Notes: generated from the letters alone by a model not told the origin. DNA of 64,000 nt from Macrostomum hystrix (GCA_950097015.1 CATNEN010000003.1:16075781-16139780), one strand, 5' to 3'; positions 11,314 to 64,000 are shown, counted from the stretch's first letter. Numbers and translations are program-made.

Positions 11314-14229
11314 TGCTCGGACTTTTTCTCTGCTCTCAGAACGAAATGATTTTGCTCTTATTTCTGCTCCTCTTCGTTCCCAGTGTTTCTCTATTTATAG
11401 GTGACAAAGCAGGTGTCGGATTTTATTCATCAGATTTCATAACCCCTACCTAGGGGTTAACTATCCAATAGCGCTTGACTTCCTCGTCAGAAGCAGTCGT
11501 CAGAAAAGTATGTTCTAGCTGCTGCTAGTTCTAACTGAATGATGAAGCAGCTCGTCAAAAAATTATGTTCTAGCTGCTGTTAGCATCCTGTTGCGCTAAA
11601 ACTGAGAAAAATACTCCGTATACAAAATAGGCTGTGTAAGTATGTTAATATAGTAGGCCCTAAAAGCTTTGTCAATATAATAGGCCCTACAGGCTGTTAG
11701 TATAATAGGCCATGCAGTCTTTGTACATACAATAGACCGTATCATTATCGGTCTGTAAATATAATATTTATAGCGCACGCAGTTTACTCTGATATACAAA
11801 AAAGTCTGGATCAGTTCTCTCTAATTAAAATATACTCGTAATTGTCATCTCTACAAGTTTAATGCAGCTATCAGCTGCGTATAAAATATATTAGATCCTA
11901 TACTAATGCTCGTTGTTGATATAATAATATATCCTGCAGCTCTCTGTTAATATTATATCTAGCCTGTTTAGATATAGTCCACGCATATAGAGAGCTTACG
12001 AAAAGGCTGACTTATTCTTCGAACTGTTGATGAATATTTTTATCTTGGCTCTCTGAAAAAAATTAAACTGTAAGCAGGTCGTTCGAGCAGTTTGGCCGGG
12101 CTAAAACTAAGACTAATTAATTTGCTAGTTTGCTTGACACCCTGCATAAAACCTTCGAAATTGAAAGGGGCACTGTCTCTTACTCGATAGTCTATGGTAG
12201 AAGTGGTGAGGAAGGACCCGCCCTGCTTTTAAGCTTGAGCCTGCGGGAGGGCCGCTCTGCGGCCATAGACATTTCCGTATTGTGTGGCTGCGGCCCGAAA
12301 GCTCTTCGCACGTATTAGCAGCAACAAATATTGAAACATTGAATTAAGAGCACTCAATTTCTGCAGCTAAGAAAGCCATTCAACGTAAAACAAACCAAAG
12401 CAATATTTTTAGTCGATATTGTGACGTTGTCATTGAATGTAGATCTAACTAGCGCCGTTTTAACTCATTTTGGAATTTTTTCAATTTAATATTCATTTCC
12501 ACCAATTTTTTTATGTTTTATTGGCTACTTTAAGCAAAAGTTTGAGTACAAAACCATCTTAATTTGTGCGATGCGATCGGAAGTTCTGTGTAATCTGCTA
12601 TCGATAATTTCTTGTTAATAGTTCCATTTTTGCGCGAGCCAATTGTAAGGCCAGTCATAGATTATGCCGGGTCAAAATTAAGCTTCTGTTGGTGCGCCCA
12701 CCCCCAGCCTGCTCCTTATCTATGAGTTATATGTCGGGCTGGAGGCTCGGAGTCGGGACCACCCTTTTCACTCTCCCGTTTTCGTTCCTTCCGCCGCTCC
12801 ACTCCTTAGCGTAGTGAGTTTGCCTTGGTCAGAGAGTGCTGTCCTGCTTACCGGCCGGCATTTCTTAGTGACCAGAAACCTTTGTACCTCGCCACCTAGC
12901 CTTCTAGTCTCAGAAGTGCACCGCCATAAGATCACGCCACGCCTTAGCCACCGGCATCTCAGCCTCTGTTATCCTCACTTCATAATTGTTGCCTGCCGCA
13001 GTGCAAGAAGGGATTCAACCCTATTATATTGTTACCCACGCTGATAACGAGCGAGTCTGTCGGTATACCTATGTCCTCTACGTCGCCAATAATAATATTC
13101 GTCATCGCCTACTATTACCGTCAATGTCTGAGTCATTGTGTAGCTTCCGCTACACAAAACTTCGCCGTGTTTGTCGTTATTTATTTCACCTGGTCCACAC
13201 CGAGAGCGTCACATATTTAATCGTTATGAGATCCATAAGCTAAATTCTACTTGAAATGTGATAATTACAAAAGTTTTATAGAAATAATAGCTAAATCAAT
13301 TTCCATAATATACACCATAAGCAAATACAGTAACTTTCGTTTTCAGCGCTAAATCTTCAAATTCACCGCGGATTCTACAAGAATGACTTTTAGAATAGAC
13401 TCGGCAAATGAAGTCGGTGACTTATTACGGGATGAGTGAGCCGTGATGCATATCAAAGTACTGATAAAGACTTATTAAGACTCTGACTGACCCCTGCCCT
13501 TCCGTTCTATCTCCCAGACCCGCCATAAATCTCTTGGCGTTCAGTGATTAATCAAACTTTCAATAAAGAGAGGGGGCGCAGTGTCTTTAATAATTCGTCC
13601 AGCTTTCCTAATTATCAATACCCGCTATCTATCTATATACTAAAAATGAAAACTATCTATATATATGTATGCGCGATCGATTTTCTCAAAAACGGCTTAA
13701 CCGATTTTCACTATTTCTTCACCAAAAGATGCCAAATATGGGGACAATTTTACACGTATTTTTATTAAGCTTAACTTTATTCCAAAGGGATTAAATATTC
13801 GAAAAACATGTTTTTTTGACTATTTCAAAGGTCAAACTATCTTGGCCTATTGAGAATTTCATTCACTGACTGCCACTGAATTAGAATTGCATCGTCAAAT
13901 TGCGCAACAACCCCTAGCTGATTGAATTTAAAGCCTGCACTCTGGAGACAAATTGGAAATAAATGTACACAACCAACCGCGAGACTAAGTGTACTCTATT
14001 TTCTTTCTTCATTGTACAAAGCCAGAACTTTGAGAATTCATTTTATAAGGCAGATTTTTGCACCCACTAACCAACAGTCGGAATAGCCGATGTGTAGGCA
14101 CTAGGAATAGGTTAGGCTAGGCTAGGGTTCGATTCTGCACTGCGTCAAATCATTTAGACTAATTTTCAGCCAGTAGTGATTGAAGATTATTTTAATTTAT
14201 TTTTTCATTTCGTAAATAAAATATCATAA

Positions 14230-16430
14230 ATCATAGCAAACCTGAGTTTGTCATAGAAAACCTGAGTTTGAATCATGGCTAAACCATAGTCTGAATCATG
14301 GCTAAACCAGAGTTTGAATCATGGCTAAACCAGAGTCTGAATCATGGCTAAACCATAGTCTGAATCATGGCTAAACCAGAGTTTGAATCATAGTTAACCA
14401 GAGTTTGAATCATGGCTAAACCAGAGCTTGAATCATGGCTAAACCAGAGCTTGAATCCTGGCAAAATCAGAGTTTTAATCATGACTAAACCAGATTTTGA
14501 ATCATGGCTAAACCAGAGCTTGAATCATAGCTAAACCAGAGTTTGAATCATGGCAAAACCAGCGTTTGAATCATGGCTAAACCAGCGTTTGAATCATGGC
14601 TAAACCAGCGTTTGAATCCTGGCAAAATCAGAGTTTTAATCATGACTAAACCAGATTTTGAATCATGGCTAAACCAGAGTCTGAATCATGGCTTAACCAG
14701 AGTTTGAATCATGGCTAAACCAGCGTTTGAATCATGGCTAACCTAGAGTCTGAATCATGGCTAAATTTGAATCAAGGCGAAACCAGAGTTTGAATCATGG
14801 CTACACCAGAGTTTGAATCATGGCTAACCTAGAGTCTGAATCATGGCTAAATTTGAATCAAGGCGAAACCAGAGTCTGAATCATGGCAAAACCAGAGTCT
14901 GATTCATGGCTAAACCAGAGTTTGAATCATGGCAAAACAAGAGTTTGAATCATAGTTAACCAGAGTTTGAATCATGGCTAAACCAGAGCTTGAATCATGG
15001 CTAAACCAGAGCTTGAATCATAGCTAAACCAGAGTTTGAATCATGGCAAAACCAGCGTTTGAATCATGGCTAAACCAGCGTTTGAATCATGGCTAAACCA
15101 GCGTTTGAATCCTGGCAAAATCAGAGTTTTAATCATGACTAAACCAGATTTTGAATCATGGCTAAACCAGAGTCTGAATCATGGCTTAACCAGAGTTTGA
15201 ATCATGGCTAAACCAGCGTTTGAATCATGGCTAACCTAGAGTCTGAATCATGGCTAAATTTGAATCAAGGCGAAACCAGAGTTTGAATCATGGCTACACC
15301 AGAGTTTGAATCATGGCTAACCTAGAGTCTGAATCATGGCTAAATTTGAATCAAGGCGAAACCAGAGTCTGAATCATGGCAAAACCAGAGTCTGATTCAT
15401 GGCTAAACCAGAGTTTGAATCATGGCAAAACAAGAGTTTGAATCATAGTTAACCAGAGTTTGAATCATGGCTAAACCAGAGCTTGAATCATGGCTAAACC
15501 AGAGCTTGAATCATAGCTAAACCAGAGTTTGAATCATGGCAAAACCAGCGTTTGAATCATGGCTAAACCAGCGTTTGAATCATGGCTAAACCAGCGTTTG
15601 AATCCTGGCAAAATCAGAGTTTTAATCATGACTAAACCAGATTTTGAATCATGGCTAAACCAGAGTCTGAATCATGGCTTAACCAGAGTTTGAATCATGG
15701 CTAAACCAGCGTTTGAATCATGGCTAACCTAGAGTCTGAATCATGGCTAAATTTGAATCAAGGCGAAACCAGAGTTTGAATCATGGCTACACCAGAGTTT
15801 GAATCATGGCTAACCTAGAGTCTGAATCATGGCTAAATTTGAATCAAGGCGAAACCAGAGTCTGAATCATGGCAAAACCAGAGTCTGATTCATGGCTAAA
15901 CCAGAGTTTGAATCATGGCAAAACAAGAGTTTGAATCATAGTTAACCAGAGTTTGAATCATGGCTAAACCAGAGCTTGAATCATGGCTAAACCAGAGCTT
16001 GAATCATAGCTAAACCAGAGTTTGAATCATGGCAAAACCAGCGTTTGAATCATGGCTAAACCAGCGTTTGAATCATGGCTAAACCAGCGTTTGAATCCTG
16101 GCAAAATCAGAGTTTTAATCATGACTAAACCAGATTTTGAATCATGGCTAAACCAGAGTCTGAATCATGGCTTAACCAGAGTTTGAATCATGGCAAAACC
16201 AGCGTTTGAATCATGGCTAACCTAGAGTCTGAATCATGGCTAAATTTGAATCAAGGCGAAACCAGAGTTTGAATCATGGCTACACCAGAGTTTAAATCAT
16301 GGCTAAAACAGAGTTTGAATCATGGCTAAATTAGAGTTTGAATCATGGTAAAACGAGAGTTTGAATCATAGCCCACCAGGGTTTAAAACATGGCGAAACC
16401 TGAGTTTGAATCTTGGCTAACCCAGCGTTT
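14230..16430. repeat. 23-bp satellite A (gaatcatggctaaaccagagttt) in U1, with 493-bp higher-order repeat
   Basis: Variant gagtttgaatcatagttaacc at 14941, 15434 and 15927. Confidence 0.95.
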
Positions 16431-16434
16431 GAAA

Positions 16435-17535
16435 AATCAACGTCAAACGGGGAGTCATCATCAAAATGGGGATCAAGGTAAACTGGGGGATAATCGTCAA
16501 CTGGAGGATCTTGGTAAACTGGGGGATCTTTGTCAACTGGGGGATCATTGTCAACTGTGGGATCATTGTCAACTGGGGGATCATTGTCAACTGGGGGATC
16601 ATTGTCAACTGGGAATTCATTGTCAACTGGGGCATCATCATCAACTGGGGGATCATCATCAACTGGGGATCATCATCAACTGGGGGATCATTGTCAACTG
16701 GGTGATCATTGTCAAGTGGGGGATCATTGTCAACTGGGGGATCATTGTCAACTGGGGGATCATTGTCAACTGAGTGATCATTGTCAACTGGGGGATCATC
16801 GTCAACTGCGGGATCATTGTCAACTGGGGGATCATGGCCAACCGGCGGGATCATTGTCAACTGGGGGATCATTGTCAACTGGGGGATCATTGTCAACTGG
16901 GGGATCATTGTCATCTGGGGGATCATTGTCAACTGGGGGGATCATTGTCAACTGGGTGATCATCATCAACTGGGGGATCATTGTCAACTGGGGGAACATT
17001 GTCAACTGGAGGAACATTGTTAACTGGGGATCATCATCAATGGGGAGACTTCATCAACTGGGGGATCATTGTGAACTGGGGGATCTTTGTTAACTTTGGG
17101 ATCATTGTCAACTGGGGGATCATTCTCAACTGGGGGATCATTGTCAACTAAAGGATCATTGTGAACTGGGGGATCTTTGTCAACTGGGGGATCATTGTCA
17201 ACTGTGGGATCATTGTCAACTGGGGGATCATTGTCAACTAGCGGATCATCGTCAACTGGGGGATCATTGTCAAATGGGGGATCATTGTCAACTAGGGGAT
17301 CATTGTCAACTGTGGGATCATTGTCAACTGGGGGATCATTGTCAACTGGGGGATCATTCTCAACTGGGGGATCATTGTCAACTGGAGGATCATTGTCAAC
17401 TAGGGGATCATTGTCAAATGGGGGATCATTGTCAACTGGGGGATCGTTGTCAACTGGGGGTTCATTGTCAACTGGGGGATCATCATCAACTAGGGATCAT
17501 CATCAACTGGGGGATCATTGTCAACTGGGGGTTCA
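16435..17535. repeat. 18-bp satellite (gggatcattgtcaactgg) in U1
   Basis: Direct inspection. Confidence 0.95.
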
Positions 17536-17632
17536 TTGTAGCTTTTAAAAGCTGTAAATTCAGCTGCTAAAAAGTATATACTGGACGAATTAAAAATATT
17601 TCTGCTCCCCGAAGGGGGGCAAAACTTGCTAG

Positions 17633-18102
17633 TCTATATAACTAAAGATGAAAACTATCTATATATATATATGTATGCGCGATCGATTTTCTCAAAAACG
17701 GCTTAACCGATTTTCACTATTTCTTCACCAAAAGATGCCAAATATGGGGACAATTATACACGTATTTTTATTAAGCTTAACTTTATTGCTAAGGGGATTA
17801 AATATTCGAAAAACTGTTTTAGATAGGATTTTTAATGCATTCAATCAGAGCCAGTTTTGTCAACGTGCATACCACTGCCAATTTTTATGATTGCATCAGG
17901 GCCAGTTTTGTTAAAAGTGAAATCTGGCGGCAGAATTTCACTGTGTCAAATGTACATAGCTGTGTCAACCCCACTGTACCTTTTCTGGCCTGCCCCGGCC
18001 TGTTTGGCTGACTATAACAATTGAATTGAGGCGTGTGTACCTGCCTACCCCCTTTGAACCAGCCTTGAACCTTTCCTGCCTGCCAATTGAATTGAGATTA
18101 CA
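17633..18102 (+). mobile_element. Helitron U2: first 470 bp of the autonomous element, interrupted at an internal A|TC
   Basis: Matches 20981-21450; stops at ...GAGATTACA, where U5 continues TCATGC and this copy continues with the TCTAATATAC start of U3. Confidence 0.88.
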
Positions 18103-18445
18103 TCTAATATACTAAAAATGAAAATCTTGCTTGCTTGCTTGCTTGCTTGTATGTTTGCAATCGACTAGCTCCCGAACGGCTCAACCGATTTTCGCAATTC
18201 CTTCGCCAAAAGATCACAAATGGGCCGGAATCGGTACACGTATTTTTATTAAGCTTAATTTCATTGCTAAGGGGATTAAATATTCGAAAAACAGTTTTAA
18301 ATAGGCTTTTCTAATGCATTCTTGTTTTCAGCTTGTGCACAGTGAGGCTCCAGTGCCAATTTTTATGATTGCATCAGAGCCAGTTTTGATAACGAACTGA
18401 TAAGAACTCCAGTGAGGCTACCCAGAGGGTAGCGAAGGCAGCTAG
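18103..18445 (+). mobile_element. Helitron U3, 343-bp mini (5' beta, 3' b)
   Basis: TCTAATATACTAAAAATG start; perfect hairpin GCTACCC-AGA-GGGTAGC at 18417-18433; ends CTAG. Confidence 0.9.
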
Positions 18446-20980
18446 TCCAACTATACTAAATCTCTAAAGTCTGTCTGTCTGTCTGTCTGTGGAATTTCGA
18501 TACACAGGCTAAATGCCTCAACCAAATTTGATCGCGTTTTTTGCTAAACATGCCAAATTTTACTGGCATGAGACCTTGAAAATTTCGTTAGTCTGCTTCA
18601 ATGCTAAAAATATTAAATATTCGAAAAACGAGTTTTCCTATTGCTTTTAATAGGAGGCCAAACAAGGTTAAATTAGAATAGGGCCGGACACTGTCAGTTT
18701 TATTAGATTGCATCGGTGCTTTTTCTCGCCCGCGCGTGCATTGGTATAGCACAGAACAGGGCCCGATACTCTCAATTGAATAGGATTGCGTCACTGCTTT
18801 TCGACCCGTACGTACGTTTATAAATTTGTCTCTTGGCTGATCGAGTGATTTGATTTGAATACGCAAAACGTACATATCAGATTTCATGATTGGGCTTTTA
18901 TGATGCTCAATGCTAGCGAGACCTCTCTTCCTCCTTTCTATCCATAAAACTGCAGCCTTTCTATTGTCAAACCTTGTCTCGACTTCGATCATTGTGCCGC
19001 TTTCTTTTCATCTAGCTCCGAAGTAAAGTACTTTAATGCTTTTGTAGAATGCAGGTAGAATTTCAGCATCGGTTTTGTTACTGCTTCTTTTTCTTCTAAT
19101 CTTCTAATCATCAGCAGTTAAAAACGTAAGTTCCTATTTATTTGTACTTTTTGGGCATTTTTGGTTCGAGTATAAATAGTAAGCGATTTTGGTTAGCTAC
19201 TGTCGAAGCAGATATTTGTTAGCTTTATTATTCCTGTACTCCCTTTCAGAAAATAGTATAAGTTTTTTCGAGTATCGGGAATTCGATAATAAAACTAAGG
19301 AAATATTTTTGTGCATAGCTGCAGGCGATATCACAATTGAGAACTGCAAGAAAAAAATATTGAGCGCAGCTAAGAGCGTAAATTATTTCAAATTTTTTTT
19401 GAGCATTGTTTAAAGCGTTATTCTATCAAAAAAATAGCTTATTTAATAATAATAATTATAAAACTTTATTCGACGAACACTGATCGAAACCGTTTTCTAA
19501 AGTGCTCAACGATTTTCTAAATGTGTCCAACGATTTTCTAAATGTGTTTAACAGTTTTCTAAATGTATCTACCGTGCCACATGTAACAGGAGATGTAACA
19601 GGAGATATTTGTTGCCTTCTGGGCTGAGTAAAACGATGGACACATCGTTTCTATGCTATTTGGGGGCAATGGTTTCCTGTCAAAGAAAAAGGGCAAACAT
19701 TTCTTGCTGCGAGTTTGGTAGCCTGCAAGTAGCCTCCATTCTGGTATTATGGAGGTTCTCTTCTGTTTGGAGAACATTAGTTCTCTGCTGCTGGGGGAAT
19801 TAGTCCTCTGCTGCTGGGGGAATTAGTTCTCTGCTGCTCGGGAAATTAGTTCTCTGCTGCTGGGGAAATTAGTTCTCTGCTGCTGGGGGAATTAGTTCTC
19901 TGCTGCTCGGGAAATTAGTTCTCTGCTGCTGGGGAAATTAGTTCTCTGCTGCTGGAGGGGAATTAGTTCTCTGCTGCTGGGGAAATTAGTTCTCATGGCA
20001 AAACCAGCGTTTGAATCATGGCTAAACCAGAGTTTGAATCATGGCTAAACCAGAGTTTGAATCATGGCTAAACCAGCGTTTGAATCATGACCAACCAGAG
20101 TCTGAATCATGGCTAAACCAGAGTTTGAATCATGGCAAAATCAGAGTTTGAATCATGGCAAAACCAGAGTTTGAAACATAGCTAAACCAGAACTGGGGGA
20201 TAATCGTCAACTGTGGGATAATTGTAAACTGGGGAATCATTATCAAATTGGGGATCATGGTCAACTGGGGATCATTGTCAAATGGGGATCATCATCATTT
20301 GGGAGTCATCATCAAATGGGGGATCATGGTCAACTGGGAGATCATTGTCAACTGGGTGATCATCATCAACTGGGGGATCATTGTCAACTAGGGGGTAACA
20401 TTGTCAACTGGGGATCATCATCAATGGGGGATCATAGTCAACTGGGAGATAATTGTCAACTGGGTGATCATCATCAACTGGGGGATCATTGTAACCTGGG
20501 GATCAATGTCAACTGGGGCATCATTGTCAACTGTGGGATCATTGTAAACTGGGGGATCAATGTCAACTGGGGGATCATTGTCAACTGGGTGATCATCATC
20601 AACTGGGGGATCATCATCATCTGGGGGATCATTGTGAACTAGGGGATCGTTGTCAACTGGGGGATCATTGTCAACTGTGGGATCCTTGTCAACTGGGGGT
20701 TCATTGTCAACTATGGGATCTTTGTCAAGTGGGGGATCATTGTCAACTGGGTGATCATCATCAATTAGGGGATCATTGTCAACTGGGGAATCATTGTCGA
20801 CTGGGGGATCATTGTCAACTGGGGGATCATTGTCAACTGGTTGATCATTGTCAACTGGTTGATCATTGTCAACTGGGGGATCATTGTAGCTTTAAAAAGC
20901 TGTAAATTCAGCTGCTAAAAAGTATATACTGGACGAATTAAAAATATTTCTGCTCCCCGAAGGGGGGCAAAACTTGCTAG
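18446..20980 (+). mobile_element. Helitron U4, chimeric non-autonomous (5' delta, 3' a)
   Basis: TCCAACTATACTAAA start with (GTCT)n; ~22-bp repeat at 19775-19995, satellite A at 19995-20190, 18-bp satellite at 20190-20888; hairpin plus CTAG at 20980. Confidence 0.87.
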
Positions 20981-21714
20981 TCTATATAACTAAAGATGAA
21001 AACTATCTATATATATATATGTATGCGCGATCGATTTTCTCAAAAACGGCTTAACCGATTTTCACTATTTCTTCACCAAAAGATGCCAAATATGGGGACA
21101 ATTATACACGTATTTTTATTAAGCTTAACTTTATTGCTAAGGGGATTAAATATTCGAAAAACTGTTTTAGATAGGATTTTTAATGCATTCAATCAGAGCC
21201 AGTTTTGTCAACGTGCATACCACTGCCAATTTTTATGATTGCATCAGGGCCAGTTTTGTTAAAAGTGAAATCTGGCGGCAGAATTTCACTGTGTCAAATG
21301 TACATAGCTGTGTCAACCCCACTGTACCTTTTCTGGCCTGCCCCGGCCTGTTTGGCTGACTATAACAATTGAATTGAGGCGTGTGTACCTGCCTACCCCC
21401 TTTGAACCAGCCTTGAACCTTTCCTGCCTGCCAATTGAATTGAGATTACATCATGCATTCTGTCTAGGCGGTGTACACCTGCATGCATTACTGAATTATA
21501 GTGCACGCTAAGAACGGTATTCTCTCAAACCCCAAAGCCCAAAGCTGTTATACTAGCTACAGTCTGAATTGGGCTGATTTGTTAACAATTCGCCTTCCTA
21601 TAAATTCTAGCATCTTCTCACCTGTTGATCCGCCCCCTTTTCTTGCAAGCTCAAATCTGATTATTCTGAGTCATCAAATATCTGATACACACTAGCATCC
21701 TTATTTTGGAAGTG

Positions 21715-24700
21715 ATGGGTCGACGTGGCGCCAGCCATTTAAAAAAGAGTCGCGAGGCTAAGAAAAAGCGACGAGAAGAGTCAGGTGCTGAACGAGAGGC
21801 GCGTCTAGCAGCACAACGGCAGCGCGAAGCCGAGCGCCGAGCCTCTGAGGCGGACGTGGACAGAGCTGCGCGGCTTGAGGATTTGCGGCAGCGAGAGGCC
21901 GAGCGCCGGGCCTCCGAGACGGACGCCGACAGAGCTGCGCGGCTTGAGGATTTGCGGCAGCGAGAGGCCGAGCGCCGGGCCTCCGAGACGGACGCCGACA
22001 GAGCTGCGCGGCTTGAGGATTTGCGGCAGCGAGAGGCCGAGCGCCGGGCCTCCGAGACGGACGCCGACAGAGCTGCGCGGCTTGAGGATTTGCGGCAGCG
22101 AGAGGCCGAGCGCCGGGCCTCCGAGACGGACGCCGACAGGGCTGCTCGGCTAGAAGGGATGCGGCAGCGAGACGCCGACCGCAGGGCTTCTGAAACCGAC
22201 TTGGAGCGCCAAGCTCGTCTGGATGCCGAGCTGTTACGTCGCCGTCGCTTGTCATTTTCGACGTGAGTTTAATTCGTTATTACATATATATTGGAATCAA
22301 ATTACTGGAATCAAAGAAGTCCTGATGGAATCAAAGAATCAAAGAACTCAAATAATTTCTGCTGGGATCAATTAATTAGTGCTAGCAGCAAATGCATTAA
22401 TGCTGGGATCAAGGAATTAATGCCCGGATCACTGAATTAATGCTTTAATTAATTACTTACCTCTGGTATCAACTTATTACCGCTGGGATAAATTAATAAC
22501 CGCTGGGATTGACTATTTACCACTGGGATCCCGCATTTACCGCTGTGATCGATGTTTTACCACTGGGATTAATTAATTACAGCTGGGATTGATTACTTAA
22601 TGATGGGATCAATTAAGAAACGATTTCAGCGCTAGGAATGACCGCTGGGATCAGAAAATGTATGCTGGGATTAAGTTATTTTTATGTGATCAATGTACTA
22701 CCGCTATAATTGTTTTTGACCGCTGGGATCAATTACTTACGGCTAGGATTAATGAATGAATGAATCACTCGTAATTGGTTGAAGCATTTTAACTGGAATT
22801 TTAACATGTTTTTCCTTCACTGCATTTTCACTTTCTAGGTATGAAAACGCAGAGCAAGCTTTGGTTCCGCTAAATGCCTTTCAAATAATTCGCATAATCG
22901 GTGATGGAAACTGTTTTTTCCATGCCGTTTGTGATCAGTTGCGAGGCACCCCGCTAGAAACTGATGCAGCTTCACTGCGGCGCACTTTGTCAAGCCGTGC
23001 AACTGAACTGATGCCAGAATTAGTGGCTGAAGGCTTTGTACTGCCGGAAGATGCAGACGCCATTGTAAATGCATCTTTTACTGAGGGAACTTATGTGCCA
23101 AATGAAATTGTACCTCTCCTAAGTCGCTGCTTTCAAGTGGACCTGGTTGTTTACCAAGGTAATGGCAATGTATTGCAAATATGTAGATCCTCTGTGCAGC
23201 CTCCTATTGCAGTTGTTTGCGTGCTTCTCAACAATGAGCACTATGAGTCGCTCAGACTTCGAGACCCACTGCATGGAGCAGAGCCTATTGAGGATTCAGA
23301 GTTCCCCACTCCTGCTGCAAGCAGAACACCTGCCAGCAGGACCAAAGTCAACTGGCGCAAGAGACCCGCTGATTCAACTCGGGGTCCTGCTGCTGCTGGC
23401 GGCCTCTCTGGCCGTGGTGCAGGACAAAGTTCGAGTTTTCATGGTCTCCCACATCCAGATGTGGAGACTCACGCCGACAACAGCTCCGGAGCTCAGCAAA
23501 GGTAGTTTATGGGCTGGATTCTTTGGATTATGGGTGGAGCCTGGTGTGCCTGATACTTTGGCTTCCTGCATCAGACCTGGTCCCTTGGTTAATGGTTTCG
23601 CGAGGTAGGAGCCACTGTTAATCACTGCGCGTATAACAATATACTGTCGCATACACTACTTTGTTGGACGCTTCCCATTACCGGTTGTACACTTACTATT
23701 ACCAATAAAGGGCTATACAAAATGGTACCAATATTGTGACCATTGATAATATTGTATTGCCACAGTGTCCCTGTAGCTCATGCAAGCTACCTTGGTCTTT
23801 AACAGCCCGATCGTTTTGAAGCCATCGTGCTGATCAATTATTGAAGAGCAGCAGCTGATTCCATTCGCAGGCGAGCGGCGGCGGCGGCGGCGGTTGCAGC
23901 GCATTCAGCCGGCCGGATGGCCTGGGCATGCGACAAGTGCGGCGCGTTGCGCTGGAAGCTGGAGGCGCCGGGAATCTGCTGCAGCGGCGGCAAAGTCCAA
24001 CTGCCGCTGCCGAATGTGCCAGAGGAGCTGCGGCTACTCTACACGGGCGAGCATGAGAAGAGCAGTGCCTTCCTAAGCAACATCAGGAAGTACAATGCAG
24101 CGCTGCACATGACTTCCTTCGGCGTGAATTACAGAGTTCTTCCCGGTGGCTGCATGAATGTGGTGATTAACGGCCAAATCCATCACAGAATCGGCAGCCT
24201 GCTTCCGAGTGAAGATCGGGGAGCTCAGTTTGTCCAGATTTTCTTCTGCGACTCCGAGTTGGAGACCAGGATGGCCATGGTCCAGGACCTGGACCGTCAC
24301 CTACTGGAACTGCTGCAGAATATTCTGCACCGGGAAAACTCCTATGTGCGGAGCTTCAAGGCTGCAATCGAGCGGCTCAGGGACGACCCCGCACTGCAGG
24401 GGGCGACTCTGGTGATTCGAGCTGATCGGAGGCCCGCTGGTGAACACGCGAGGTGAGCAGAGAGGTCATTCTCATCTATCATTTTGTCTTAGGCTATTTC
24501 TGTATTTATCTTAGCATTTATCTTTTTGAGTTCTCTAATTTCTCTCCCCTTTTACTTTCTCACTCCACTCTCTTGCCATTTTGTCATTCTGATAGTCGTG
24601 ATGTCTTTTTCCACATTCTTCATTGTGTATCATGTACTTTAGAGCTGTTGTATAATTTTGAATACACTCATGTGTTTCGTCAGTACTTTGCAATTGGAAC

Positions 24701-29387: not shown

Positions 29388-30199
29388 AAACCTGATGAGC
29401 TAACACTCTGTATTATTTAAAGTTAGGACTCATTCTCCTTGACATGTGTCATGATAGTCACTGGTATCTGACCTCCTGTATAAAGTCTAACTTTAGTTGT
29501 ATAGAAGAATATTCGAGTAGAAGACTTGCAATGGAAAAGACAGAAATATTCCTATATCAACATGCTTCAAGATATTTATCTGTAGAAAGTGAAAAGTAAC
29601 AAATTCAGATATTTGAAAACAACAAATATATCAGTTCATGTTGATTAAATGGTTAATAGAACGCAGAGCTTTATACAGGGCGTCACTTGTCCAGTCCACT
29701 TTTGTAATGGCGTAGCCTGAGCATTTATCATGCGGTTGCATTTCTCTCCGGATCTTTCTGAAGGAGACAGCTCAGGTTGATAAGCGTGATTTCATTATGT
29801 TCTGCGTAGTGCAGCGCCAGTCTAAGATGCATTGACATCTCTCTTTCTTAGCAAAAGGTTTACCTTTTCTGGCGTTCGAAATCACGCCGGCTAGACACTA
29901 AATTGCACAATCCTTAGTTGAGGATTTTGAGCTTAGCCGAGAGAACGGCTCTGTCACTTTACTGTTTGAGTGATGGAGCACTTGTCCACAGAGCCTCGTC
30001 CACTCTGTGTGTCAAACGTTCTACTTTGGGGAGCTCTGTCTAGCCATGAGCATCAGAATGATGCGGGTTCGAACAGTCATTGGGACCTTGTAATACTCCA
30101 TTTGACGATTTTGTGCACGAGTCTTGTGCTTGCAACTTTTTGGTAGTCGGAGAGTAGCTCCATAATAATTATAGGCAAAATTAACTACACAAGACGATT

Positions 30200-35069: not shown

Positions 35070-35149
35070 GTGTTTGCAGCGTTCAGAGATAGTTTTGAGT
35101 TGGAAGTTGGTTTTCTAGCAGGCTGTCTCTGCTTGATCTGTCTTCTAGC

Positions 35150-53264: not shown

Positions 53265-56200
53265 TCCACTATACTAAAAATGAAATGGTTGGTTGGTTGG
53301 TTGGTTGCTTGCTTGTAATTGATTTTCTCCCGAACGGCTCAACCGATTTTCACCATTTCTTCACCAAAAGATGCTAAATATGGGGACAATTTTACACGTA
53401 TTTTTATTAAGCTGAACTTCATTGCTAAGGGGATTAAATATTCGAAAAACATGATTTTTTAAAGGTCAAACCATCTTGGCCTATTGAGAATTTCACTGAC
53501 AGCCACTGAATTAGAATTGCATCGTCAAATTGCGCAACAACCCCTAGCTGATTGAATTTGAAGCCTGCACTCTGGAGACAAATTTGAAATAAATGTACAC
53601 AACCAACTGCGAGACTGAGTGTACTCTATTTTCTTACTTCATTGTACAAAGCCAGAACTTTGAGAATTCATTTTATAAGGCTGATTTTTGCACCCACTAA
53701 CCAACAGTCGGAATAGCCGATGTGTAGGCACTAGGAATAGGTTAGGCTAGGCTAGGGTTCGATTCTGCACTGGGTCAAATCATTTAGACTAATTTTCAGC
53801 CAGTAGTGATTGAAGATTATTTTATATTATTTTTTTCATTTCGTAAATAAAATATCATAAATCATAGCAAATCTGAGTTTGAATCATGGCTAAACCAGAG
53901 TTTGAATCATGGCTAAACCAGCGTCTGAATCATGGCTAAACCAGAGTTTGAATCATGGCTAAACCAGAGTCTGAATCATGGCTAAACCAGAGTTTAAATC
54001 ATGGCTAAACCAGAGTCTGAATCATGGCTTAACCAGAGTTTGAATCATGGCTAAACCAGAGTCTGAATCATGGCTAAACCAGCGTCTGAATCATGGCTAA
54101 ACCAGAGTTTGAACCATGGCTAAACCAGAGTCTGAATCATGGCTAAACCAGAGTTTAAATCATGGCTAAACCAGAGTCTGAATCATGGCTAAACCAGAGT
54201 TTCAATCATGGCTAAACCAGCGTCTGAATCATGGCTAAACCAGCGTCTGAATCATGGCTAAACCAGAGTTTGAATCATGGCTAAACCAGAGTCTGAATCA
54301 TGGCTAAACCAGCGTCTGAATCATGGCTAAACCAGAGTCTGAATCATGGCTAAACCAGAGTTTGAAACATGGCTAAACCAGAGCTTGAATCATGGCAAAA
54401 CCAGAGTCTGAATCATGGCTAAACCAGAGTCTGAATCATGGCAAAACGAGAGTTTGAATCATAGCCCACCAGGGTTTAAAACATGGCTAAACCAGAGTTT
54501 GAATCTTGGCTAAACCAGAGTTTGAATCATAGCCAACCAGAGTCTGAATCATGGCAAAACGAGAGTTTGAATCATAGCCCACCAGGGTTTAAAACATGGC
54601 GAAACCTGAGTTTAACCTGGTTGGTTGGTTGGTTGCTTGCTTGTAATTGATTTTCTCCCGAACGGCTCAACCGATTTTCACCATTTCTTCACCAAAAGAT
54701 GCTAAATATGGGGACAATTTTACACGTATTTTTATTAAGCTGAACTTCATTGCTAAGGGGATTAAATATTCGAAAAACATGATTTTTTAAAGGTCAAACC
54801 ATCTTGGCCTATTGAGAATTTCTGGCTCTGGCTAAACCAGAGTCTGAATCATGGCTAAACCAGCGTCTGAATCATGGCTAAACCAGAGTTTGAACCATGG
54901 CTAAACCAGAGTCTGAATCATGGCTAAACCAGAGTTTAAATCATGGCTAAACCAGAGTCTGAATCATGGCTAAACCAGAGTTTCAATCATGGCTAAACCA
55001 GCGTCTGAATCATGGCTAAACCAGCGTCTGAATCATGGCTAAACCAGAGTTTGAATCATGGCTAAACCAGAGTCTGAATCATGTCTAAACCAGCGTCTGA
55101 ATCATGGCTAAACCAGAGTCTGAATCATGGCTAAACCAGAGTCTGAATCATGGCTAAACCAGAGTTTGAAACATGGCTAAACCAGAGCTTGAATCATGGC
55201 AAAACCAGAGTCTGAATCATGGCTAAACCAGAGTCTGAATCATGGCAAAACGAGAGTTTGAATCATAGCCCACCAGGGTTTAAAACATGGCTAAACCAGA
55301 GTTTGAATCTTGGCTAAACCAGAGTTTGAATCATAGCCAACCAGAGTCTGAATCATGGCAAAACGAGAGTTTGAATCATAGCCCACCAGGGTTTAAAACA
55401 TGGCGAAACCTGAGTTTAAATCATGGCTAAACCAGAGTCTGAATCATGGCTTAACCAGAGTTTAAATCATGGCTAAACCAGAGTCTGAATCATGGCTAAA
55501 CCAGAGTTTCAATCATGGCTAAACCAGCGTCTGAATCATGGCTAAACCAGCGTCTGAATCATGGCTAAACCAGAGTCTGAATCATGGCTAAACCAGAGTT
55601 TGAATCATGGCTAAACCAGAGTTTGAAACATGGCTAAACCAGAGCTTGAATCATGGCAAAACCAGAGTCTGAATCATGGCTAAACCAGAGTTTAAATCAT
55701 GGCTAAACCAGAGTTTGAATCATAGCCAACCAGAGTCTGAATCATGGCAAAACGAGAGTTTGAATCATAGCCCACCAGGGTTTAAAACATGGCTAAACCA
55801 GAGTTTGAATCTTGGCTAAACCAGAGTTTGAATCATAGCCAACCAGAGTCTGAATCATGGCAAAACGAGAGTTTGAACCATAGCCCACCAGGGTTTAAAA
55901 CATGGCGAAACCTGAGTTTAAATCATGGCTAAACCAGAGTCTGAATCATGGCTTAACCAGAGTTTAAATCATGGCTAAACCAGAGTCTGAATCATGGCTA
56001 AACCAGAGTTTCAATCATGGCTAAACCAGCGTCTGAATCATGGCTAAACCAGCGTCTGAATCATGGCTAAACCAGAGTCTGAATCATGGCTAAACCAGAG
56101 TTTGAATCATGGCTAAACCAGAGTTTGAAACATGGCTAAACCAGAGCTTGAATCATGGCAAAACCAGAGTCTGAATCATGGCTAAACCAGAGTTTAAATC

Positions 56201-59160
56201 ATGGCTAAACCAGAGTTTGAATCATAGCCAACCAGAGTCTGAATCATGGCAAAACGAGAGTTTGAATCATAGCCCACCAGGGTTTAAAACATGGCTAAAC
56301 CAGAGTTTGAATCTTGGCTAAACCAGAGTTTGAATCATAGCCAACCAGAGTCTGAATCATGGCAAAACGAGAGTTTGAATCATAGCCCACCAGGGTTTAA
56401 AACATGGCGAAACCAGAGTCTGAATCATGGCTTAACCAGAGTTTGAATCATGGCTAAACCAGAGTCTGAATCATGGCTAAACCAGCGTCTGAATCATGGC
56501 TAAACCAGAGTTTGAACCATGGCTAAACCAGAGTCTGAATCATGGCTAAACCAGAGTTTCAATCATGGCTAAACCAGCGTCTGAATCATGGCTAAACCAG
56601 CGTCTGAATCATGGCTAAACCAGAGTTTGAATCATGGCTAAACCAGAGTCTGAATCATGGCTAAACCAGCGTCTGAATCATGGCTAAACCAGAGTCTGAA
56701 TCATGGCTAAACCAGAGTCTGAATCATGGCTAAACCAGAGTTTGAATCATGGCTAAACCAGAGTTTGAAACATGGCTAAACCAGAGCTTGAATCATGGCA
56801 AAACCAGAGTCTGAATCATGGCTAAACCAGAGTTTGAATCATGGCTAAACCAGAGTCTGAATCATGGCTAAACCAGCGTCTGAATCATGGCTAAACCAGA
56901 GTCTGAATCATGGCTAAACCAGAGTCTGAATCATGGCTAAACCAGAGTTTGAATCATGGCTAAACCAGAGTTTGAAACATGGCTAAACCAGAGCTTGAAT
57001 CATGGCAAAACCAGAGTCTGAATCATGGCTAAACCAGAGTCTGAATCATGGCAAAACGAGAGTTTGAATCATAGCCCACCAGGGTTTAAAACATGGCTAA
57101 ACCAGAGTTTGAATCTTGGCTAAACCAGAGTTTGAATCATAGCCAACCAGAGTCTGAATCATGGCAAAACGCGAGTTTGAATCATAGCCCACCAGGGTTT
57201 AAAACATGGCGAAACCTGAGTTTGAATCTTGGCTAACCCAGTGTTTGAAAAATCAACGTCAACTGGGGAGTCATCATCAAATTGGGGATCATGGTGAACT
57301 GGGGGATAATCGTCAACTGGGGAATCATGGTAAACTGGGGGATAATTGTCAACTGGGGGATCATTGTCAACTGGGGGATCATTGTCAACTGGGGGATCAT
57401 TGTCAACTGGGGGATCATTGTCAACTGGGGGATCATCGTCAACTGGGGGATCATTGTCAACTGGGGTATCATTTTCAACTGGGGGATCATTGTCAACTAG
57501 GGGATCATTGTCCACTGGGGAATGATTGTCAACTGGGTAATCATGTCAACTGGGGGATCATTGTCAACTGGGGGATCATTGTCAACTGTAGGATCATTGT
57601 CAACTAGGGGATCATGGCCAACTGGGGATCATTGTGAACTGGGTGATCATTGTCAACTGGGGGATCGTCTTCAACTGGGGGATCATTGTCAACTGGGAGA
57701 TCATTGTAAACTGGGGGATCATCATCAACTGGGGGATCATTGTCAACTGGGGGATCATTGTCAACTGTAGGATCATTGTCAACTAGGGGATCATGGCCAA
57801 CTGGGGATCATTGTGAACTGGGTGATCATTGTCAACTGGGGGATCATCTTCAACTGGGGGATCATTGTCAACTGGGAGATCATTGTAAACTGGGGGATCA
57901 TCATCAACTGGGGGATCATTGTCAACTGTGGGATCATTGTCAACTAGGGGATCATGGCCAACTGGGGATCATTGTGAACTGGGTGATCATTGTCAACTGG
58001 GGGATCATCTTCAACTGGGTGATCATTGTCAACTGGGGTATCATTGTAAACTGGGGGATCATTGTCCACTGGGGAATGATTGTCAACTGGGTAAACATTG
58101 TCAACTGGGTAATCATTGTCAACTGGGGGATCATTGTCAACTGGGGGATCATTGTCAACTGGGGGATCATTGTCAACTGGGGGATCATTGTAAACTGGGG
58201 GATCATTTTCAACTGGGAGATCATTGTAAACTGGGGAATCATCATCAACTGGGGGATCATTGTAAACTGGGGGATCATTGTCAACTGTGGGATCATTGTC
58301 AACTAGGGGATCATGGCCAACTGGGGATCATTGTGAACTGGGGGATCATTGTCAACTGGGGGAACATTGTCAACTGGGGGATCATTGTCAACTGGGAGAT
58401 CATTGTAAACTGGGGAATCATCATCAACTGGGGGATCATTGTATACTGGGGGATCATTGTCAACTGTGGGATCATTGTCAAGTAGGGGATCATGGCCAAC
58501 TGGGGATCATTGTGAACTGGGGGATCATTGTCAACTGGGGGAACATTGTCAACTGGGGGATCATTGTCAACTGGGAGATCATTGTAAACTGGGGAATCAT
58601 CATCAACTGGGGGATCATTGTAAACTGGGGGATCATTGTCAACTGTGGGATCATTGTCAACTAGGGGATCATGGCCAACTGGGGATCATTGTGAACTGGG
58701 GGATCATTGTCAACTGGTGGATCATTGTCAACTGGGAGATCATTGTCAACTGGGGGATCATTGTCAACTGGGGGATCATTGTCAACTGGAGGATCATTGT
58801 CAACTGGGTGATCATTATCAACTGGGGGATCATTGTCAACTGGGGGATCATTGTCAACTGTGGGATCATTGTCAACTGGGGGATCATTGTCAACTGGTGG
58901 ATCATTGTCAACTGGGAGATCATTGTCAACTGGGAGATCATTGTCAACTGGGGGATCATTGTCAACTGGGGGATCATTGTCAACTGGGTGATCATTATCA
59001 ACTGGGGGATCATTGTGAACTGGGGGATCATTGTCAACTGGGGGATCATTGTCAACTGATCATTGTAGCGCAAAAAAGGCTGACAATACAGCTGCTAAAA
59101 AGTATATACTGGACGAGTTAAAAATATTTCTGCTCCCCGAAGGGGGGCAAAACTTGCTAG
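53265..59160 (+). mobile_element. Helitron U11, non-autonomous (gamma/a); satellite A ~53860-57246, 18-bp satellite ~57250-59066
   Basis: TC start; hairpin plus CTAG ending at 59160. Confidence 0.9.
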
Positions 59161-59488
59161 TCTAATATACTAAAAATGAAAATCTTGCTTGCTTGTTTGC
59201 AATCGACTAGCTCCCGAACGGCTCAACCGATTTTCGCAATTCCTTCGCCAAAAGATCACAAATGGGCCGGAATCGGTACACGTAATTTTATTAAGCTTAA
59301 TTCCATTGCCAAGGGGATTAAATATTCGAAAAACAGTTTTAAATAGGCTTTTCTAATGCATTCTTGTTTTCAGCTTGTGCACAGTGAGGCCTCCAGTGCC
59401 AATTTTAATGATTGCATCAGAGCCAGTTTTGATAACGCACTGATAAGAACTCCAGTGAGGCTACCCAGAGGGTAGCGAAGGCAGCTAG
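59161..59488 (+). mobile_element. Helitron U12, 328-bp mini (beta/b)
   Basis: TC start, hairpin, CTAG at 59485-59488. Confidence 0.9.
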
Positions 59489-59823
59489 TCTTTCTAATAT
59501 ACTAAAAATGAAAATCTTGCTTGCTTGTATGTTTGCAATCGACTAGCTCCCGAACGGCTCAACCGATTTTCGCAATTCCTTCGCTAAAAGATCACAATTG
59601 GTCCCGAATCGGTACACGTATTTTTATTAAGCTTAATTCCATTGCCAAGGGGATTAAATATTCGAAAAACAGTTTTAAATAGGCTTTTCTAATGCATTCT
59701 TGTTTTCAGCTTGTGCACAGTGAGGCTCCAGTGCCAACTTTAATGATTGCATCAGAGCCAGTTTTGATAACAAACTGATAAGAACTCCAGTGAGGCTACC
59801 CAGAGGGTAGCGAAGGCAGCTAG
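59489..59823 (+). mobile_element. Helitron U13, mini (beta/b), with 4 extra nt TCTT before the usual start at 59493
   Basis: CTAG|TCTT|TCTAATATAC; hairpin; CTAG at 59820-59823. Confidence 0.88.
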
Positions 59824-62800
59824 TCCACTATACTAAAAATGAAATGCTTGCTTGCTTGTAATTGATTTTCTCCCGAACGGCTCAACCGATTTTCACCATT
59901 TCTTCACCAAAAGATGCCAAATATGGGGACAATTTTACACGTATTTTTATTAAGCTTAACTTCATTGCTAAGGGGATTAAATATTCGAAAAACATGATTT
60001 TTTAAAGGTCAAACCATCTTGGCCTATTGAGAATTTCACTGACAGCCACTGAATTAGAATTGCATCGTCAAATTGCGCAACAACCCCTAGCTGATTGAAT
60101 TTGAAGCCTGCACTCTGGAGAAAAAATTGAAATAAATGTACACAACCAACCGCGAGACTGAGTGTACTCTATTTTCTTACTTCATTGTGCAAAGCCAGAA
60201 CTTTGAGAATTCATTTTATAAGGCTGATTTTTGCACCCACTAACCAACAGTCGGAATAGCCGATGTGTAGGCACTAGGAATAGGTTAGGCTAGGCTAGGG
60301 TTCGATTCTGCACTGCGTCAAATCATTTAGACTAATTTTCAGCCAGTAGTGATTGAAGATTATTTTAATTTATTTTTTCATTTCGTAAATAAAATATCAT
60401 AAATCATAGCAAATCTGAGTTTGAATCATTGCAACAATAGAGTCTGAATCATGGCTAAACCAGAGTCTGAATCATGGCTAAACCATCGTTTGAATCATGG
60501 CTAAACCATCGTTTGAATCATGGCTAAACAATTGTTTGAATCATGGCTAAACCAGAGTTTGAATCATGGCTAAACCAGAGTCTGAATCATGGCTAAACCA
60601 GATCTTGAACCATGGCTAAACCATCGTTTGAATCATGGCTAAACCAGAGTCTGAATCATGGCTAAACCAGATCTTGAATCATGGCTAAACAATTGTTTGA
60701 ATCATGGCTAAACCAGAGTTTAAATCATGGCAAAACCAGATCTTGAATCATGGCTAAACAATTGTTTGAATCATGGCTAAACCAGAGTTTGAATCATGGC
60801 TAAACCATCGTTTGAATCATGGCTAAACCAGATCTTGAATCATGGCTAAACAATTGTTTGAATCATGGCTAAACCAGAGTTTGAATCATGGCAAAACCAG
60901 AGTTTGAATCATGGCCAACCAGAGTTTGAATCATGGCTAAACCAGAGTTTGAATCATGGCTAAACCAGCGTTTGAATCATGGCTAAACCATCGTTTGAAT
61001 CATGGCTAAACCAGAGTTTGAATCATGGCAAAACCAGAGTTTGAATCATGGCCAACCAGAGTTTGAATCATGGCTAAACCAGAGTTTGAATCATGGCTAA
61101 ACCAGCGTTTGAATCATGGCTAAACCAGAGTCTGAATCATGGCTAAACCAGAGTCTGAATCATGGCTAAACCAGAGTCTGAATCATGGCTAAACCAGAGT
61201 CTGAATCATGGCTAAACCAGAGTCTGAATCATGGCTAAACCAGAGTCTGAATCATGGCTAAACCAGAGTTTCAATCATGGCTAAACCAGATCTTGAATCA
61301 TGACTAAACCAGAGTTTAAATCATGGCTAAACCATCGTTTGAATCATGGCTAACCCAGAGTCTGAATCATGGCTAAACCAGATCTTGAATCATGGCTAAA
61401 CCCGATCTTGAATCATGGCTAAACCAGAGTTTCAATCATGGCTAAACCAGATCTTGAATCATGACTAAACCAGAGTTTAAATCATGGCTAAAGCATCGTT
61501 TGAATCATGGCTAACCCAGAGTCTGAATCATGGCTAAACCAGATCTTGAATCATGGCTAAACCCGATCTTGAATCATGGCTAAACCAGAGTTTCAATCAT
61601 GGCTAAACCAGATCTTGAATCATGACTAAACCAGAGTTTAAATCATGGCTAAAGCATCGTTTGAATCATGGCTAACCCAGAGTCTGAATCATGGCTAAAC
61701 CAGATCTTGAATCATGGCTAAACCCGATCTTGAATCATGGCTAAACCAGAGTTTCAATCATGGCTAAACCAGATCTTGAATCATGACTAAACCAGAGTTT
61801 AAATCATGGCTAAAGCATCGTTTGAATCATGGCTAACCCAGAGTCTGAATCATGGCTAAACCAGATCTTGAATCATGGCTAAACCCGATCTTGAATCATG
61901 GCTAAACCAGAGTTTCAATCATGGCTAAACCAGATCTTGAATCATGACTAAACCAGAGTTTAAATCATGGCTAAAGCATCGTTTGAATCATGGCTAAACC
62001 ATCGTTTGAATCATGGCTAAACCATCGTTTGAATCATGGCTAAACCAGATTTTGAATCATTGCTAAACCAGATCTTGATTCATGGCTAAACCAGAGTTTA
62101 AATCATGGCTAAACCAGAGTCTGAATCATGGCTAAACCAGATCTTGAATCATGGCTAAACCATTGTTTGAATCATGGCTAAACCAGAGTCTGAATCATGG
62201 CTAAACCAGAGTCTGAATCATGGCTAAACCAGATCTTGAATCATGGCTAAACCCGATCTTGAATCATGGCTAAACCATCGTTTGAATCATGGCTAAACCA
62301 TCGTTTGAATCATGACTAAACCATCGTTTGAATCATGGCTAAACCAGATTTTGAATCATGGCTAAACCATCGTTTGAATCATGACTAAACCATCGTTTGA
62401 ATCATGGCTAAACCAGATTTTGAATCATGGCTAAACCATCGTTTGAATCATGGCTAAACCAGAGTTTCAATCATGGCTAAACCAGATCTTGAATCATGAC
62501 TAAACCAGAGTTTAAATCATGGCTAAACCATCGTTTGAATCATGGCTAACCCAGAGTCTGAATCATGGCTAAACCAGATCTTGAATCATGGCTAAACCCG
62601 ATCTTGAATCATGGCTAAACCAGAGTTTCAATCATGGCTAAACCAGATCTTGAATCATGACTAAACCAGAGTTTAAATCATGGCTAAAGCATCGTTTGAA
62701 TCATGGCTAACCCAGAGTCTGAATCATGGCTAAACCAGATCTTGAATCATGGCTAAACCCGATCTTGAATCATGGCTAAACCAGAGTTTCAATCATGGCT

Positions 62801-64000
62801 AAACCAGATCTTGAATCATGACTAAACCAGAGTTTAAATCATGGCTAAAGCATCGTTTGAATCATGGCTAACCCAGAGTCTGAATCATGGCTAAACCAGA
62901 CTTTGAATCATAGCCAACCAGAGTTTGAATCTTGGCTAAACCAGAGTTTCAATCATGGCTAACCCAGCGTTTGAATCATGGCTAAACCAGAGTTTGAATC
63001 ATGGCAAAAACCAAGTTTCAATCATGGCTAACCCAGCGCTTGAATCATGGCTAAACCAGAGTTTGAATCATAGCCAACCAGAGTTTGAATCTTGGCTAAA
63101 CCAGAGTCTGAATCATGGCAAAACGAGAGTTTGAATCATAGCCCACCAGGGTTTAAAACATGGCGAAACCTGAGTTTGAATCTTGGCTAACCCAGCGTTT
63201 GAAAATCAACGTCAACTGGGGAGTCATCATCAAAATGGGGATCATGGTGAACTGGGGGATCATGGTAAACTGGGGGATAATTGTCGACTGGGGGATCATT
63301 GTCAACTGGGGGATCATTGTCAACTGGGGGATCATTGTCAACTGGGGGATCATTGTCAACTGGGGGATCATTGTCAAATGGGGGATCATTGTCAACTGGG
63401 GGATCTTTGTCAACTGGGGGTTCATTGTCAACTGGGGGTTCATTGTCAACTGGGGGATCATTGTCAACTGGGGGATCATTGTGAACTGAGAGATCATTGT
63501 CAACTGGGGGGTAATGGTCAACTGGGGGATAATTGTCAACTGGGGAATCATCATCAACTGAGGATCATCATCAACTGGGGGATCATTGAGAACTGGGGGA
63601 TCTTTGTCAACTGGGGGATCATTGTGAACTGGGGGATCTTTGTCAACTGGGGGATCATTGTATACTGTGGGATCATTGTCAACCGGCGGGATCTTTGTTA
63701 ACTGGGGGATCATTGTCAACTGGGGGATCATTCTCAACTGGGGGATCATTGTCAACTGGGGGATCATCATCAACTGGGGGATCATTGTCAACTGGGGGAT
63801 CATTGTCAACTGGGGGATCATTGTCAACTGGGGGATCATTGTCAACTGGGTGATCATCATCAACTGGGGGATCATTGTCAACTTGGGGAACATTGTTAAC
63901 TGGGGATCATCATCAATGGGGAGACTTCATCAACTGGGGGATCATTGTGAACTGGGGGATCTTGTTAACTGGGGGATCATTGTCAACTGGGGATCATTGT
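59824..64000 (+). mobile_element. Helitron U14 (5' gamma), near-identical to U10, runs off the window; satellite A ~60402-63200, 18-bp satellite ~63205-64000
   Basis: Same start and variant order as U10 at offset 11982 (ORF 51178 corresponds to 63160). Confidence 0.88.

Follow-up and report, generated by a model that had tools for sequence, protein, structure and literature searches.

How does an uninterrupted train of different Helitrons, all on one strand and with no host DNA between them, come into being? This question is raised by the last 64 kb of contig C3 of Macrostomum hystrix (GCA_950097015.1 CATNEN010000003.1:16075781-16139780; 64,000 nucleotides, hereafter the window). The Helitron train found there is at least 61 kb long and made up of at least 16 units from several families, all on the same strand, in a chain that continues unbroken across the end of C3 and the start of contig C5; both figures are lower bounds, as the assembly gap between C3 and C5 may hide more. 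We consider that three processes together, namely addition of units directed to resident Helitron starts, local copying and internal rearrangement, built this train, with a probability of roughly 0.6.

Joints, insertion site and extent of the train

Twelve joints of the form hairpin-N8-CTAG|TC (the bar marks the joint) are found in the window, after positions 17632, 18445, 20980, 35628, 42399, 42736, 43077, 47841, 53264, 59160, 59488 and 59823. Each consists of a GC-rich 7-bp hairpin, an 8-nt spacer and CTAG, with TC immediately next. A preliminary description of this DNA had listed the same twelve joints together with four 5' and four 3' end types, and motif search allowing up to four edits agrees with it on both counts. 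The 3' types are 3A (five times), 3B (five times), 3C and 3D (once each); the 5' types are 5a/5a', 5b, 5c and 5d. All joints lie on the plus strand, and no Helitron end motifs were found on the minus strand of the window. Reversed-pattern controls gave 0 matches in the genome, so the joints are not due to chance. Canonical Helitron ends (5' TC, 3' CTRR and a GC-rich hairpin close to the end) are present at 12/12 joints; a 470-bp head fragment (U2, see below) has no 3' end.

Neighbouring units are mostly different elements, as first described, since eight of the twelve joints connect different families. The remaining four connect like units, twice S|S (S being a 0.34-kb unit) and twice F1|F1. 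This is not the pattern of a rolling-circle concatemer, in which the same element is repeated with identical junctions. It corresponds to the arrangement known from maize, where CTAG|TC unites unrelated Helitrons with zero host bases between them. Unit sizes span 0.33-14.6 kb, also in agreement with the preliminary description. Its total of 14 elements needs revision: twelve joints bound 13 segments, one of which (17633-18445) consists of a head fragment and an S unit.

The insertion site of the train is provided by a dispersed host repeat, R, which supplies approximately 220 bp adjoining the train on the left (R left half, 13407-13627, plus strand; many copies at 87-95% identity). From C5:13552 onward, directly after the last Helitron unit, R continues with its right half. 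Uninterrupted R copies elsewhere read ...CCCGCTA|TATCAAAGTCTAAAT... across the position split by the train, and the R consensus GCTA|TATCAAAG is split exactly, without target-site duplication. The right edge of the train, CTAG|TATCAAAG, lies at C5:13551. CTAG followed by TATCAAAGTCTAA has a single occurrence in the genome, at this very position, 13.5 kb from the C5 start and on the same strand, and the junction of the R left half with the Helitron is likewise unique genome-wide. Since R halves stand at both edges and each junction is unique, the whole train sits at a single A|T site, free of duplication, within one copy of R. This bears out the earlier statement that no host DNA separates the units. 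The founding target is A|TA, not A|TC.

Both boundaries of the array had to be redrawn. On the left, comparison of the window with the R consensus places the boundary at 13628 and not at 13632, because four leftover start letters, TCTA (13628-13631, plus strand), stand between the host A and the canonical start of the first unit. On the right, the array is indeed continuous to position 64000 as described, but this point is an assembly break of C3 inside the last unit of the window (U14), and the train resumes on C5 from position 1 in the same orientation. C5 opens within an F1 unit 99.95% identical to U10 of the window; then follow an F1 unit of 5446 bp, an F1 unit of 4257 bp and the R right half.

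The R family itself comprises tens of copies at 87-95% identity and has a conserved left end, ...ACTAGGCTAGTAATGAAGTCGG. The host flank of the window (1-10100) contains large internal duplications, 18-1875 versus 3979-5830 and 2460-3188 versus 7899-8627 (97.4% identity each), and 59-bp tandem repeats at 360-573, 4309-4522 and 9171-9325.

Helitron joints and scars across the genome

Flanks of Helitron ends were counted in the whole genome, using an exact 23-mer for 3A (353 ends), the exact S-unit end for 3B (383 ends) and exact starts for 5d (234 starts). The 3A ends are followed by TC in 176 cases, by T but not C in 175 and by a base other than T in 2. For 3B, TC follows 339 of the 383 ends and T without C the other 44. 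A predominance of solo copies, which would speak against a self-targeted array, is thus not observed for either end type. The 351/353 3A ends followed by T, the TC...CTAG ends with hairpin and the insertion of the train at A|T without duplication are all in line with canonical Helitrons, as the preliminary description held. In public short Logan contigs, the depth of Helitron-start words exceeds that of unique DNA about 1000-fold; none of these contigs bridges the host|U1 joint, and those of runs X2-X4 do not extend over the host flank.

A recognisable Helitron start (TC-N6-7-ACTAAA) follows the 3A end at 156 joints; this count relies on a 13-letter 3A anchor, shorter than the one behind the total of 353, and is hence not its subset. 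Start types after the 3A end are diverse: the first 100 joints listed comprise 49 cognate 5d starts, 22 of type 5c and 29 other variants. Where T but not C follows, TA is about as frequent as TT, and TG accounts for 7 of the first 100 listed. Enrichment of TC at solo sites, proposed earlier, was not found, with at most about 20 TC flanks lacking a Helitron start; solo flanks are mainly TA and TT, and the founding site of the train, too, is A|TA. The recognised feature must therefore exceed the A|TC dinucleotide. A sample of 20 non-TC flanks of 3B ends contains 12-14 Helitron starts in truncated or stuttered form and only 6-8 host-like sequences. S units rarely form the right edge of a train.

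Seen from the other side, 5d starts come after A in 55 of 234 cases and after a different base in 179. They are seldom preceded by A because most come after CTAG (about half of all 5d starts) or after leftover letters. In the first 100 cases without A, the preceding base is G in 68, T in 17 and C in 15, the T- and C-preceded ones being three leftover letters (TCT or TCC) ahead of a full start.

Approximately one quarter of exact 5d starts carry such three letters (TCC/TCT), for example at C1:16694307, C3:2238424 and C1:19905175. They are sometimes serial (CTAG|TCT|TCT|CCT|TCC...) and occur also where the upstream DNA is host. Leftover triplets at 5d are mostly without a truncated partner; excision footprint, imprecise cleavage and slippage are candidate origins. 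On the 3' side, rare variants of Helitron-Helitron joints have a 3A end devoid of its last G (…CTTGCTA|TC…; C4:322343, C4:325362 and C1:10163610). At C25:2895806-2895891, T(TC)6, a (TC)n stack, separates an S 3' end from the truncated start of another Helitron family. A sequence that does not look like a Helitron, ...GGTTAGGCTAGGCTAGGGTTCGATTCTGCACTGC(A/G)TCAAA, precedes the 5c start at C1:16705796, C4:326571 and C2:8048330.

The S-S-F1 order seen in the window (U7-U9) is found again at 20 or more loci, where the number of S units is often 3-18. Scars and relatives were analysed in a sample of 20 S-array loci, with 149 S units entering the nearest-relative test. Ninety-one junctions are canonical, 8 are without TC (CTAG|TAATATAC) and one is missing more; about 30 are stuttered, e.g. 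TCT or TCTTCTATC ahead of the start. In all, the S arrays display about 29 variants of the junction. A stutter lies exactly one unit upstream of 6 of the 9 truncated starts, compared with 27 of 151 other junctions (odds ratio 9.2, Fisher p=0.003). A start devoid of TC together with a stutter one unit upstream is expected when a unit inserts into a resident start, whereas concatemers and crossing-over copy such junctions and do not create them. The paired scars in S arrays point to landing on resident 5' starts. The 3' ends, unlike the starts, are nearly invariant, as the two non-T flanks among all 3A ends illustrate. New units would thus seem to be added 5' of the resident, at least in the case of S units; this order is favoured because scars hit starts and not ends and because S is almost never right-most. 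Starts without TC belong to S arrays and not to 3A|5d joints. Landing of F1 two to three letters inside the start was rejected as a candidate, since it predicts CTAG followed by non-T, which is confined to the same two ends.

The nearest relative of an S unit lies in its own array in 29.5% of cases (6.6% expected at random) and at another locus in about 70%; median best identity is 98.3% to other loci versus 96.9% within the locus. Adjacent S pairs have adjacent best matches elsewhere in 8 of 123 cases, against a random expectation of 5.0±2.2. As shared order was no better than random, the notion that S arrays arose mainly through joint mobilisation of multi-S blocks was rejected. A train on C2 contains a copy of the U6 tail with 99.4% identity to that in the window, while the adjoining S unit is merely 91.8% identical; the same train also has close relatives of U8, U11, U12 and U13, in different order. 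These comparisons favour assembly unit by unit, probably from a common active pool, in combination with local duplication.

Anatomy of the units and local copying

All units are on the plus strand. U1 (13632-17632) is an F1-type non-autonomous Helitron with a 5a'-type start, a 3A end and two minisatellites (23-bp at 14229-16433 and 18-bp at 16468-17539). The composite segment that follows (17633-18445) starts with U2 (17633-18102), a 5' head fragment of 470 bp that is 100% identical to positions 1-470 of U5 and passes at 18102|18103 into a complete S unit of 0.34 kb, U3 (18103-18445; 5c start, 3B end). The U2|U3 joint falls where intact U5 has ...GATTACA|TCATGC, an internal A|TC. The next Helitron, U4 (18446-20980), is likewise non-autonomous; it has a 5b start, minisatellites of 23 bp and 18 bp, and a 3A end. 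U3 and U4 are together flanked by the two copies of a 556-bp perfect direct repeat (17547-18102 and 20895-21450), each composed of 86 bp of 3A tail and the 470-bp 5a head.

U5 (20981-35628) is a protein-coding Helitron of 14.6 kb with a 3C end and a 20-bp minisatellite (33180-35069). U6 (35629-42399) has an S-like 5c head of 295 bp and a 3D end, and 5.5 kb of it are occupied by another 23-bp minisatellite. Two S units follow, U7 (42400-42736) and U8 (42737-43077), and then three F1 units, U9 (43078-47841), U10 (47842-53264) and U11 (53265-59160), each of which has a 5d start, minisatellites of 23 bp and 18 bp, and a 3A end. U12 and U13 (59161-59823) are again S units; leftover letters TCTT (59489-59492) precede the U13 start. 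U14 (59824-64000), an F1 unit interrupted by the end of C3, is 99.93% identical to U10. The majority of non-coding units consist largely of minisatellite, namely arrays of 23 bp and 18 bp in U4 and the F1 family and another 23-bp array in U6.

U5 matches Pfam families Helitron_like_N (7e-50), PIF1 (6e-65) and Pif1_2B (1.6e-19) and hence has the Rep/HUH domain and PIF1-like helicase that define RepHel. Its coding region is distributed over at least six open stretches that differ in frame, a pattern compatible with introns or with damage. Upstream of Rep, an STPR-like repeat and a weak OTU match are found. Within the first open stretch (21706-22266), a 69-bp tandem repeat (21817-22187) matches the DNA-binding STPR repeat of Pfam (3e-16) and might serve transposases of this family as a DNA-binding module at the N terminus. 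An RPA70-like gene on the minus strand of U5 was considered, but three minus-strand open reading frames, taken unspliced, had no Pfam match.

Positions 471-499 of U5 occur once in the genome. Since U5 sequence past position 470 is unique, U2 is a local duplicate of the U5 head rather than what is left of another coding copy. Such a copy, split by the train so that U2 formed its left part and the missing 14 kb lay beyond the train, was rejected for the assembled sequence on this ground and because the train ends on C5 with an F1 unit followed directly by R, with the proviso that the gap between C3 and C5 could hide more. The only other genome match to U5 beyond its first ~340 bp, C38:33093391-33094166 (88% over 342-1082), implies at most one diverged relative of the U5 subtype in the assembly. 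The U2-U3-U4 structure would result from unequal exchange between similar U1/U4 tails or minisatellites, given a partner chromosome with S-U4 at the internal site; a chimeric element re-inserted at the U5 start would give it too.

F1 units provide a second case of duplication. Their 575-bp start is 100% identical in U10, in U14 and in the two units that are complete on C5, one of which closes the train on the right. The next best genome match has 98% identity, and the identical copies are confined to this train, so these four starts are local copies and no divergence gradient exists along the array. The youngest-looking feature, U2 with its 556-bp perfect repeat, is situated inside the train. 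Other trains display copying of whole blocks: the one at C1:25.816-25.848 Mb has a 4902/4773/5078 periodicity, repeated twice, and the one at C14:0.695-0.721 Mb a 3689/5021 periodicity, repeated three times, and junction variants on both track the block period. Units as well as blocks have been copied locally.

Origin of the train

The proposed course of events would begin with one canonical, duplication-free A|T insertion in an R copy, which would then have grown in place to its present extent. RepHel would add units precisely where a resident Helitron has its 5' start, or at other loci a few letters within this start, which is itself a natural cleavage site of the transposase. Because starts are related across the families present here, one transposase pool could serve all of them. 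Local copying, demonstrated by the identical starts and block periods, may have proceeded by unequal exchange or by local re-insertion. At least one rearrangement took place at the internal A|TC of the coding element, perhaps by one of the routes given above. A train produced by addition, copying and rearrangement is a mosaic and not a dated stack.

Self-targeting of Helitron starts is probably the best account of how the joints arose. The preliminary description had proposed self-targeting in a particular form, and one part of it stands: Helitron-Helitron joints are in excess (50% of 3A and 88% of 3B ends) and scars are located at starts. The preference for an A|TC dinucleotide that it invoked is not seen at solo sites. 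A more far-reaching version, which we hold with slightly less than even confidence, states that the transposase prefers resident 5' starts of any family with related starts, that mixed "cassette trains" so formed are later amplified as blocks, and that S lives almost solely on the starts of others.

Several points weigh against start-directed addition. The scar statistic is based on 9 truncated junctions, and two of the six paired cases come from one duplicated block. Stutters lack a partner in 27 of 33 cases, so another source of stutters exists. The two scars of this locus, TCTA (13628) and TCTT (59489), are themselves without a truncated partner downstream; order of events and polarity are thus not fixed at this locus. 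Since the sample comprised 20 S arrays, true donors may lie outside it, and the order U6-like, (S)n, F1 at three or more other loci fits joint mobilisation as well. Outside the S family, units may also have been added at 3' ends, at a G|T site.

The same data may be read without any targeting. Rare chance adjacencies would then have been spread by 3' read-through giving composites, by rolling-circle concatemers and by unequal crossing-over. Recurrence of S-S-F1 and of the U6-like, (S)n, F1 order agrees with this, as do the block duplications on C1, on C14 and within S arrays, the excess of nearest S relatives in the own array over random and the restriction of the four identical F1 starts to this train. 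Complementary scars, however, are not created by concatemers or crossing-over, unit order between loci is shared at random level only, identities of neighbouring units are discordant between loci, and many start types come after the same 3A end. We consider spread of chance adjacencies unlikely on these grounds. Even less probable is a strict stack, in which all units entered at the outer left host-A|TC so that the youngest unit is on the left and the oldest on the right. This was the proposal of the preliminary description, according to which the array would grow at its 5' end and record insertion order, and which suggested that divergence be compared with array position. A stack obeys the AT rule, S units are seldom right-most, and leftover start letters do occur at the outer left end. 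On the other hand, the rightmost start equals those of U10, U14 and the other complete C5 unit, yet units between them are just 95% identical; the youngest-looking U2 and its repeat are internal; and block duplications elsewhere represent non-terminal growth. Moreover, internal CTAG|TC junctions present the same start as the outer one, which leaves no reason for hits at the outer left site alone.

Two further explanations dispense with growth at this locus. The whole train might be a giant composite, made elsewhere and inserted once from the U1 start to the last 3' end. Its single duplication-free A|T site is what such an event would leave, and 3'-end read-through is established for Helitrons (PMC4778049), but outside the locus neither the identical F1 start nor the U2|U3 joint nor U5 past 470 bp is present in a second copy, and 61 kb is far above the size of other units in the train; we regard this as very improbable. 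Hardly credible is an assembly artefact in which repeats were collapsed or chained. The contig break does lie inside near-identical F1 units, and short public contigs bridge no joint. Nevertheless, joints of these types are present by the hundreds, on many contigs and with micro-variants of their own, and the unique flanks fit a single R copy.

Helitron target choice and the origin of arrays are still argued mainly from sequence, with concatemers set against consecutive insertions and 5' against 3' addition. This genome is rich test material in this respect, offering hundreds of precise mixed joints, paired scars, a 0.34-kb unit that is almost never solo and a coding element inside the train. 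If true, start-directed integration would explain Helitron clustering, composites with new ends and the birth of Helitron-derived satellites, and would supply a testable target rule for RepHel enzymes. An S unit living on the starts of other Helitrons would, in turn, represent a direct route from transposon to satellite DNA. As regards annotation, apparent satellite blocks and contig breaks in this genome are Helitron trains.

Comparison with known systems

Bacterial HUH transposons IS91 and IS608 insert beside short sequences resembling their own end-cleavage site. A target resembling the own cleavage site is the same logic as that proposed here for start-directed landing; these elements are prokaryotic and have fixed tetranucleotide targets. 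To our knowledge, trains of mixed elements have not been described for them. Among eukaryotic elements, the Helraiser transposase cuts single-stranded DNA between the flank and the 5' TC (Grabundzija et al. 2016, PMC4778049). Abutting insertion, as at the joints here, is recognised in the same work with empty-site support in bats, though as an occasional source of new 3' ends and not as the dominant mode building long trains. For Helitron insertion near other Helitrons, Yang & Bennetzen 2009 are cited.

The closest precedent is found in maize, where unrelated Helitrons abut, CTAG to TC, at a G/T junction without host A (Du, Caronna, He, Dooner 2008, PMC2267711). The pair is polymorphic among maize lines. 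Both insertion orders were discussed and left open, including the use of host A plus resident T as a canonical AT site, so that the core idea of the preliminary description had already been stated in 2008. The maize case concerns two elements at one locus; here, at least 16 units are chained, and genome-wide about half (F1) to nearly 90% (S) of 3' ends take part in joints. Furthermore, the left maize element occurs alone, favouring 3'-end addition or excision, whereas scars in the present genome point to the 5' start. Heterotypic Helitrons that abut, and the two possible orders of their insertion, have thus been published before, while long mixed trains and start-side scars appear to be undescribed in the literature searched; our searches found no description of either, nor of Helitrons in Macrostomum.

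Tandem Helitron arrays are usually ascribed to rolling-circle concatemers, as for Helibat in Myotis (Pritham & Feschotte 2007, as cited in later papers); another such array is formed by Helitron-1_DPe on the Y chromosome of Drosophila pseudoobscura (PMC9248874). Like the train, these arrays have precise end-to-start junctions (equivalent to the circle junction) and one orientation. They repeat one element, in contrast to the 8/12 joints between families and the junction micro-variants observed here.

Helitrons or Helentrons carrying satellites include Drosophila DINE-TR1, oyster Helitron-linked satellites (PMC8268682) and Helitrons at Paramecium chromosome ends with an LTS-satellite-RTS layout (PMC13085455). 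Similarly to units described in this work, they are non-autonomous and their body is mostly minisatellite, and the S unit behaves as a satellite monomer. The difference is that each S monomer keeps a full Helitron start and a hairpin-CTAG end.

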